DNA of 64,000 nucleotides from Utricularia gibba. Taxonomy: Eukaryota; Plantae; Magnoliophyta. The notes below the pieces were generated by a model. It was given only the letters and a program-made list of their open reading frames with translations. It was not told the origin of the DNA and searched no databases. Location of the stretch: NCBI GenBank assembly GCA_002189035.1, contig NEEC01000002.1, positions 1,178,001 to 1,242,000 on the forward strand, in the 5' to 3' direction. The translations under genes were made by a program, and so were the position numbers. Positions 6,192 through 7,379 of this stretch are shown here, one piece after another; the stretch's first letter is position 1, and each line of letters opens with the position of its first letter.

Positions 6192-7379
6192 TCAAAGCTC
6201 GTCCCTTGTGTGAGATGGTTGATAGAATTGCTTGTCCCAGTGGTATGGGAAACTCAATGTAGCCGCTGTATGTCGCATATTCCAGTCTTGGTAAATGAAC
6301 CTGAGATCCACGTTTGAAACCAGGGAAAAGAAGAGCATCAGTCTCTAATCATGCTCATGCTACACAAAACAATGCTAGGAAAAGGCAGTAAAGAATAAGC
6401 AACAGCAATCAAGAGAAGTCTAAATCTATGAAATCAATATGAAGCTCACTGATGAAAAACTCACACTTTAATAGGCGGGCGGGATATGATGACCAGAACT
6501 TGCAAATCTTCATATTCATCTGTGTTCCAGACCTTGCATAACAGATAGATGCCATTGATAAGGGAGAAACATCAGCAGAATGAAGGTATGATACGGCAAT
6601 GAGAACAGGGAACCAAAAACATTCCAAAAATGTAGAACATAGTCACCAATACGATTTTATGTTCATAGAGATAACAGAATTGTGATTTGCAACCGAATGC
6701 TCATGTGAAAGAACATGAAATCTACAAGAAAAGCTTCCTATAAACCTGATGCACATCGTTGACAGGTACATGAAATGTACTGTTGGCAAAAATGGGGAAC
6801 TCTTTTGGGCTCCCGGGATAATTAGTATGAGAATTAGAGGCGAGGTAAAGCGTCCCTCTGCCTTTCAGAACCACAAAGACTTCCTCACACGAGTGCCTAT
6901 GAATTGGAGTATGAGAACCAGGAGCAAATGTCTGAAGCCATACCTCAACCTACATTTTTTTCACACAATCAAGAATCCCAAGACAGGAAAGAGAAACATA
7001 ATCGCGAAAATGGCAAGAAAACCAAATAGAAAAACTTCACTGCATCAAGTGCACCAATATGAACCCACCTCCTTAAAACCATGCATGAGCGAGCCAGCGA
7101 CGGTTATATGAGAAAAGCCGGGTCTGCCATAGCTGTCCTGATCAATCTCACTGATGTTCCTCACTATGGGTACCTCTGAAACTCACGGTCGAGGAAAGGA
7201 AATTGGATTATTGACACACCCTCAATAAATTCCGGATAATCAAGTCTAAGAACTGCAAATACATCGTCTTGATTAAATCAGGCCGCTGGGAGTAGTGACT
7301 CACCGTTACTCGCAAATTGCGACGCTCCAATGGACGAAGACAGTATGGAAATCATAACCGGGATCCAAAGAAACCCCAT
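6192..7379 (-). CDS. ABP1: Auxin-binding protein 1 (cupin), 5 exons, 187 aa
   Basis: Exons 7304-7379, 7069-7175, 6746-6949, 6465-6532 and 6192-6300 splice in frame at GT-AG sites. They give a signal peptide, [50 protein letters not shown] and C-terminal RDEL. Confidence 0.97.

Follow-up and report, generated by a model that had tools for sequence, protein, structure and literature searches.

Utricularia gibba carries, on the minus strand of the window (i.e. the whole 64,000-nt stretch of DNA that was analysed), an ABP1 gene in which both positions of the Cys2-Cys155 disulfide of maize ABP1 are occupied by phenylalanine. Is this paired replacement an error or a mark of decay, a redesign of the protein in a single lineage, or one instance of a wider pattern among eudicot ABP1s? 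The gene model and the residues on which these questions turn are as follows.

6192..7379, minus strand: ABP1 gene from start to stop codon, with five exons, 187 codons and a CDS of 564 nt
7304..7379, minus strand: exon 1, encoding the signal peptide and first mature residues (…IGASQFASN)
7314..7316, minus strand: TTT, codon 22 (Phe22), in the column of maize Cys2, the N-terminal half of the disulfide
7069..7175, minus strand: exon 2, from VPIVRNIS… to …HGFKE, with an Auxin_BP match
6746..6949, minus strand: exon 3, the cupin core, with HRHSCEE (zinc ligands and box-A Cys), an NST sequon and NDVHQ (fourth zinc ligand)
6465..6532, minus strand: exon 4, placed by translation and by an RNA contig joint of 6463/6465 with 6298/6300
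6192..6300, minus strand: exon 5, the C-terminal arm, with Trp173 (maize Trp151), Phe177 and RDEL
6225..6227, minus strand: TTC, codon 177 (Phe177), opposite maize Cys155, the C-terminal half of the disulfide
6195..6206, minus strand: AGG GAC GAG CTT, the RDEL ER-retrieval tetrapeptide, which is KDEL in 98% of eudicot ABP1s

Family membership was examined using exon-by-exon translation and Pfam. Every intron reads GT..AG on the minus strand. The Auxin_BP profile (PF02041) matched exon 2 (E 1.7e-12, profile positions 10-43), exon 3 (E 3.1e-37, positions 44-110) and exon 5 (E 3.6e-10, positions 134-167), all three matches exceeding the cutoff of 21 bits. The translated protein has a hydrophobic N-terminus and ends in RDEL, which probably acts as a working ER-retrieval signal. 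Exons 2-5 measure 107, 204, 68 and 109 nt, as they do in all eight Lamiales genes that were mapped, and no other ABP1 gene occurs within the 64-kb window.

The maize ABP1 crystal structure (PDB 1LR5/1LRH) is reportedly that of Woo et al. 2002. Exon 3, aligned with residues 41-107 of 1LR5, places HRHSCEE on His57, His59, Cys61 and Glu63 and NDVHQ on His106. Exon 5, aligned with residues 131-158, places HWDKQF on VWDEDC, with its W on Trp151 and Phe opposite Cys155, and the exon-1 Phe shares a column with the N-terminal Cys in alignments with eudicot ABP1s. The window protein is like maize ABP1 in that the cupin core, zinc ligands (His57/His59/Glu63/His106), box-A Cys61, Trp151 and N-glycan sequon all align; it is unlike it in having Phe for Cys2 and Cys155, RDEL as compared to KDEL, and Arg, Ser and Lys at maize Pro139, Lys146 and Glu153 (maize numbering inferred from the 1LR5 alignment). 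With Phe in both columns, the Cys2-Cys155 disulfide is absent. A sequence-only reading of this locus had reported Phe for both cysteines (TTT at 7316-7314, TTC at 6227-6225), and translation together with the 1LR5 and eudicot alignments confirmed this. Its description of an intact zinc/auxin site and intact splice frames agreed with the 1LR5 alignment, the GT..AG introns and spliced RNA contigs, and it was correct that the box-A Cys is the only one remaining and that neither Phe codon lies in a G/C run.

Contigs of four public sequencing runs were placed on positions 6000-7600. Run X3 is a DNA run from a study separate from that of the probable source sample, X5 and X7 are RNA-like and come from two other studies, and X16 derives from a close relative (i.e. 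organism B). Both Phe codons were present without any alternative letter in the X3, X5 and X7 contigs, and neither TGT nor TGC was found at either site in DNA or RNA, which was the check that the sequence-only reading had proposed. X3 spans the whole of 6000-7600 and differs from the window by six single letters and one 1-base deletion, none of them at the Phe codons; the single difference in the CDS is synonymous (6207, ACA to ACG), as compared to six changes in introns. X5 and X7 each gave one contig, about 2.2 kb long, from which precisely the four modelled introns are absent and in which the letters of exon 1 and exon 5 are unchanged. The concurrence of the X3, X5 and X7 contigs indicates that ABP1 is transcribed and spliced as modelled and that the Phe codons are real in independent DNA and RNA.

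Spliced contigs of organism B take in exons 4 and 5, together with portions of exons 2 and 3, but do not reach exon 1. At 6227-6225 organism B reads TTT, also Phe (TTC in the window), and this codon is one step from the TGT of Lamiales relatives at the C-terminal site. Organism B has the R161, K175, F177 and R184 of the window, with Asn in place of Ser168 (at 6253). Presence of the C-terminal Phe in organism B indicates that loss of the C-terminal Cys is older than the split between the window lineage and organism B.

These data bear directly on the proposal that the Phe codons are assembly errors or belong to an unexpressed, neutral pseudogene. Homopolymer-type assembly errors elsewhere in the genome, which the sequence-only reading had remarked on, give this proposal some basis, but X3, X5 and X7, which come from three studies and comprise independent DNA as well as RNA-like data, give the same letters at both codons; splicing in the RNA contigs is correct, and organism B has the C-site Phe. 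An intact frame and an omega well under 0.1 (see below) speak against a dying gene. We regard an artefact or a dying gene as extremely improbable, and the earlier judgement that assembly error is not the cause is upheld, as the X3, X5 and X7 contigs carry the same codons.

A search of exon 3 against 1.84 billion representative sequences matched only ABP1s. Full-length ABP1 matches were aligned with the window exons as separate rows, and these alignments served as input to two word-index searches. The closest proteins to the window ABP1 are from Lamiales, at 75% identity (Salvia hispanica, Sesamum indicum and Handroanthus); neither the exhaustive exon-3 search nor the word-index searches returned a relative of >75% identity or the window's own protein. 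In a tree of 132 eudicot ABP1s, the window fell inside one of two core-Lamiales paralogue clades, together with Sesamum indicum, Handroanthus_a, Salvia, Perilla, Buddleja, Castilleja, Andrographis, Erythranthe chr14, Orobanche minor and Phlomoides. The other clade contains Handroanthus_b, Sesamum calycinum, Erythranthe chr04, Rehmannia, Phtheirospermum and Orobanche gracilis. Within the window's clade, the window ABP1 itself has the longest terminal branch. The ABP1s of Sesamum indicum, Salvia and Handroanthus_a (P0153, P0175 and P0169) share with the window their exon sizes, paralogue clade and 75% identity, whereas those of Sesamum and Salvia retain both cysteines and the window dS to all three proteins is saturated.

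The state of the two cysteine sites was recorded for 140 aligned rows (about 130 eudicot ABP1s). Cysteine was present at both sites in 119 of the 140 rows. With evident N-terminal gene-model artefacts set aside, replacements in other lineages, given as N-site / C-site with the last three one-sided, were as follows.

Erythranthe chr14 copy (three assemblies): F / S
Macadamia: F / I
Bertholletia: A / F
Linum trigynum: Y / P
Helianthus: S / W
Malania: G / W
Orobanche minor: Y / H
Fraxinus: deleted / Q
Handroanthus_a: W / C
Cicer: L / C
Smallanthus: C / W

The ABP1s of Macadamia, Bertholletia, Linum, Helianthus, Malania, Orobanche minor and Fraxinus are like that of the window in being otherwise intact proteins without the bridge cysteines. 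These seven are unrelated lineages, with different replacement residues, and in no case carry the P161R or RDEL of the window.

One further case came from genomic contigs (L009-L011) of a plant found in 17 Logan contigs, which were fetched by following two exon-3 fragments that read HRHSSEE. This plant has an intact five-exon ABP1 with zero cysteines (L009:754-2739). Its N-site codon is TTT (Phe), its box-A codon, beside the zinc ligands, is TCT (Ser) and its C-site codon is TAT (Tyr); the gene clusters with the Erythranthe chr14 copy (support 87/77). The Erythranthe guttata/nasuta chr14 ABP1s (P0167, P0182 and P0205) and the L009 plant belong to the window's clade and resemble the window in that the N-site is Phe (TTT) and the C-site lacks Cys. 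They differ from it in having Ser or Tyr, not Phe, at the C-site and an otherwise canonical C-terminal arm (MPHTAAKLKFPYYWDE…KDEL), and the L009 protein differs also in loss of the box-A Cys. As for common descent of the N-site Phe with Erythranthe chr14 and L009, the placement of the window within its clade is unsettled and a common clade was not rejected (AU test, p 0.42). The first intron of the L009 gene has a GC donor (GCAAGT).

A 1-kb ENA metagenome scaffold (L012:463-672) also contains a plant ABP1 exon 3 that reads HRHSSEE, with the box-A Cys replaced by Ser. This exon has an unusual 18-residue wording in common with the window, and the scaffold contains no other ABP1 exons.

When the two sites were masked and the fewest changes were counted on the tree, the N-site required 11 changes, the C-site 9 and the state 'both lost' 9. 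The paired cysteine loss in the window is one case of a recurrent, coupled loss that is still confined to a minority of eudicot ABP1s. It had been assumed that angiosperm ABP1s always have Cys at both sites; this does not hold, as about eight other eudicot lineages, plus the L009 plant, are without either. The Cys2-Cys155 disulfide is typical of the ABP1 family but not defining, since it is also missing in these eight or so lineages. The prospect raised beforehand that double loss might be common among eudicots is correct as to recurrence and wrong as to frequency, given the 119 rows that keep both cysteines. No report of recurrent loss of the Cys2-Cys155 bridge, and none of ABP1 in Utricularia, was found in the literature searched, which covered few subscription papers.

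Within the core Lamiales, losses were distributed unequally between the two paralogue clades. Both cysteines were kept in all six sampled members of the clade to which the window does not belong. In the window's clade there were at least four separate losses, affecting Erythranthe chr14, the L009 plant, Orobanche minor, Handroanthus_a and the window. This distribution, together with the retention of a canonical second copy in both Erythranthe and Handroanthus, would fit a redundant paralogue, i.e. a second, canonical Cys/Cys ABP1 elsewhere in the genome, with the window copy subfunctionalised and the constraint on its clasp relaxed. General relaxation is, however, contradicted by an omega of 0.05-0.08 for the window gene, and we treat redundancy as a tentative possibility that is rather unlikely to be correct.

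Loss at one site was associated with loss at the other. By lineage there were 9 double losses, 2 N-only losses and 1 C-only loss, a coupling with a naive Fisher p of 3e-11 and a binomial chance of 6e-9 for 9 of 11. A strict test of independent pairs on well-supported branches gave about 4 to 0 in the same direction (p 0.125), with too few pairs for significance. The C-site was lost first where Smallanthus (C/W) stands beside Helianthus (S/W), and the N-site where Erythranthe (F/S) stands beside L009 (F/Y), indicating that either site can go first. Coupled losses are the pattern expected of a disulfide pair because a Cys left without its partner is a burden to a secreted protein and gives way before long to another residue. 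The concerted loss proposed in the sequence-only reading is thus supported by the coupling of the two sites.

That reading had also suggested that a Phe-Phe contact replaced the bridge. In relatives both sites are TGT or TGC, from which the TTT and TTC of the window each require a single G-to-T change. Replacements elsewhere (F, S, Y, W and G) are likewise mostly one-step neighbours of TGY. A designed Phe-Phe contact is not needed, because both Phe residues are one base change from TGY, as are most replacements. Under equal one-step outcomes, Phe at both sites has a chance of about 2%, which leaves room for some preference for hydrophobic side chains without requiring it. At least one aromatic residue occurs at the pair in 9 of the 10 double-loss lineages, an excess over the expectation from the genetic code that is not significant (p 0.11).

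Selection on the gene was assessed using the CDS of eight Lamiales ABP1s, mapped from genomic loci, and the Nei-Gojobori method applied to the mature part. As compared to its own clade, the window ABP1 showed a dN of 0.10-0.14 and a dS of about 2 or undefined (pS 0.70), giving an omega of about 0.05-0.08. As dS is saturated against other Lamiales this omega is a bound only, and a three-taxon decomposition gave no value for the window branch. Other members of the clade had a mean dS of 0.8 and an omega of 0.10, and the cysteine-free L009 gene and Erythranthe chr14 had omegas of 0.08-0.16, low enough to place them under selection as well. The window ABP1 is under purifying selection and is not decaying. 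Low omega with saturated dS indicates that the window's long branch stems from very rapid substitution in its lineage, not from relaxed constraint. The idea, allowed for in the sequence-only reading, that the gene might be unexpressed and neutral fails against the spliced RNA contigs and this omega.

Change within the protein was uneven. Conserved sites were defined by a consensus of at least 90% among 131 eudicot ABP1s, and the window departs from the consensus at 7 of 102 such sites, 5 of which are among the 20 in exon 5 (P161R, K168S, E175K, C177F and K184R, the last producing RDEL). In exons 3-4 all 57 conserved sites are unchanged (0/43 changed in exon 3 and 0/14 in exon 4), and the difference between exon 5 and the rest is significant (Fisher p 0.003). 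Pro at 161, now Arg in the window, is invariant among the 131 eudicot ABP1s, and the K to R change at KDEL occurs in none of them; organism B also has RDEL. The dN of exon 5 relative to the rest is 2-3 times in the window as compared to 1.3 times among other Lamiales. What sets the window lineage apart is the excess change at conserved sites of the C-terminal arm (P161R, K168S, E175K and RDEL). The arm that bears Trp151, once pinned by the disulfide, has changed more than the rest of the protein, by either drift after the loss or re-tuning.

Such clustering might suggest adaptive re-engineering, with a Phe-Phe aromatic contact and a co-adapted C-terminal arm altering mobility, auxin affinity or coupling to TMK. 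In favour of this are the low chance of Phe at both sites, the frequency of aromatics at the pair, the concentration of conserved-site changes in the arm (including the otherwise invariant Pro) and the expression and purifying selection of the gene. Against it, both Phe codons are single steps from TGY, the aromatic excess is not significant, and other lineages use S, G, A, P, Q or I, so that there is no common compensating contact. Adaptive re-engineering is on balance improbable.

The explanation that we consider probable as a whole is that the gene is an ABP1 orthologue, expressed and functional, from one of the two paralogue clades of core Lamiales, and that its clasp was lost as part of a recurrent, coupled process along one-step codon paths. 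The Cys2-Cys155 clasp would have disappeared through one G-to-T substitution at each site (TGT to TTT; TGY to TTY), with the loss at the C-terminal site probably preceding the split from organism B. Once one Cys was gone, its unpaired partner would soon have been replaced, mostly by a residue reached through a single base change. The cupin barrel and zinc/auxin site would meanwhile have been held under strong purifying selection, and the module of N-terminus and C-terminal arm, formerly tied by the disulfide, may have drifted or been re-tuned (P161R, K168S, E175K and KDEL to RDEL). Recurrent coupled loss implies that whatever function selection maintains in ABP1 does not depend on the disulfide. 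Judged from the conserved ligands only, auxin binding would be retained; the C-terminal arm is predicted to be more mobile and the Phe residues are likely to be without a special role. The suggestion of the sequence-only reading that C-terminal mobility, auxin affinity or TMK signalling could be altered in the window lineage may hold.

According to a review, rearrangements of the C-terminus and the N-terminus upon auxin binding may be linked through the Cys2-Cys155 bridge (PMC4625063). That the bridge has been discarded at least nine times in eudicots under purifying selection argues that it is not essential for the selected function of ABP1. The window gene, Erythranthe chr14, Helianthus, Macadamia and others form natural 'mutants' for the role of the bridge in auxin binding and stability. 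Taken alone, the window ABP1 is a modest variant specific to its lineage, and its paired loss is not unique. A bolder proposal is that it is the sole ABP1 of a fast-evolving Lamiales lineage and that its clasp was rebuilt as a unit, comprising the aromatic pair with P161R, K168S, E175K and RDEL. We give this little credence; if true, it would mean a changed auxin-dependent movement of the Trp-bearing C-terminal arm and hence changed cell-surface (TMK-type) signalling.

The surroundings of the gene were also examined. RNA contigs with spliced ABP1 extend about 1.4 kb below 6000, over plus-strand ORFs at 4783-5313 and 5465-5992, neither of which had a Pfam match. This transcript extension (4600-6192) represents a long 3' UTR or else a convergent neighbour whose transcript overlaps the 3' end of ABP1. 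The Pfam scan of ORFs beside ABP1 produced nothing usable for synteny; among these neighbours, the plus-strand ORF at 8157-9509 encodes an LRR protein with an LRRNT_2 cap and the minus-strand ORF at 2822-3544 a DUF7851 protein (E 2.9e-97).
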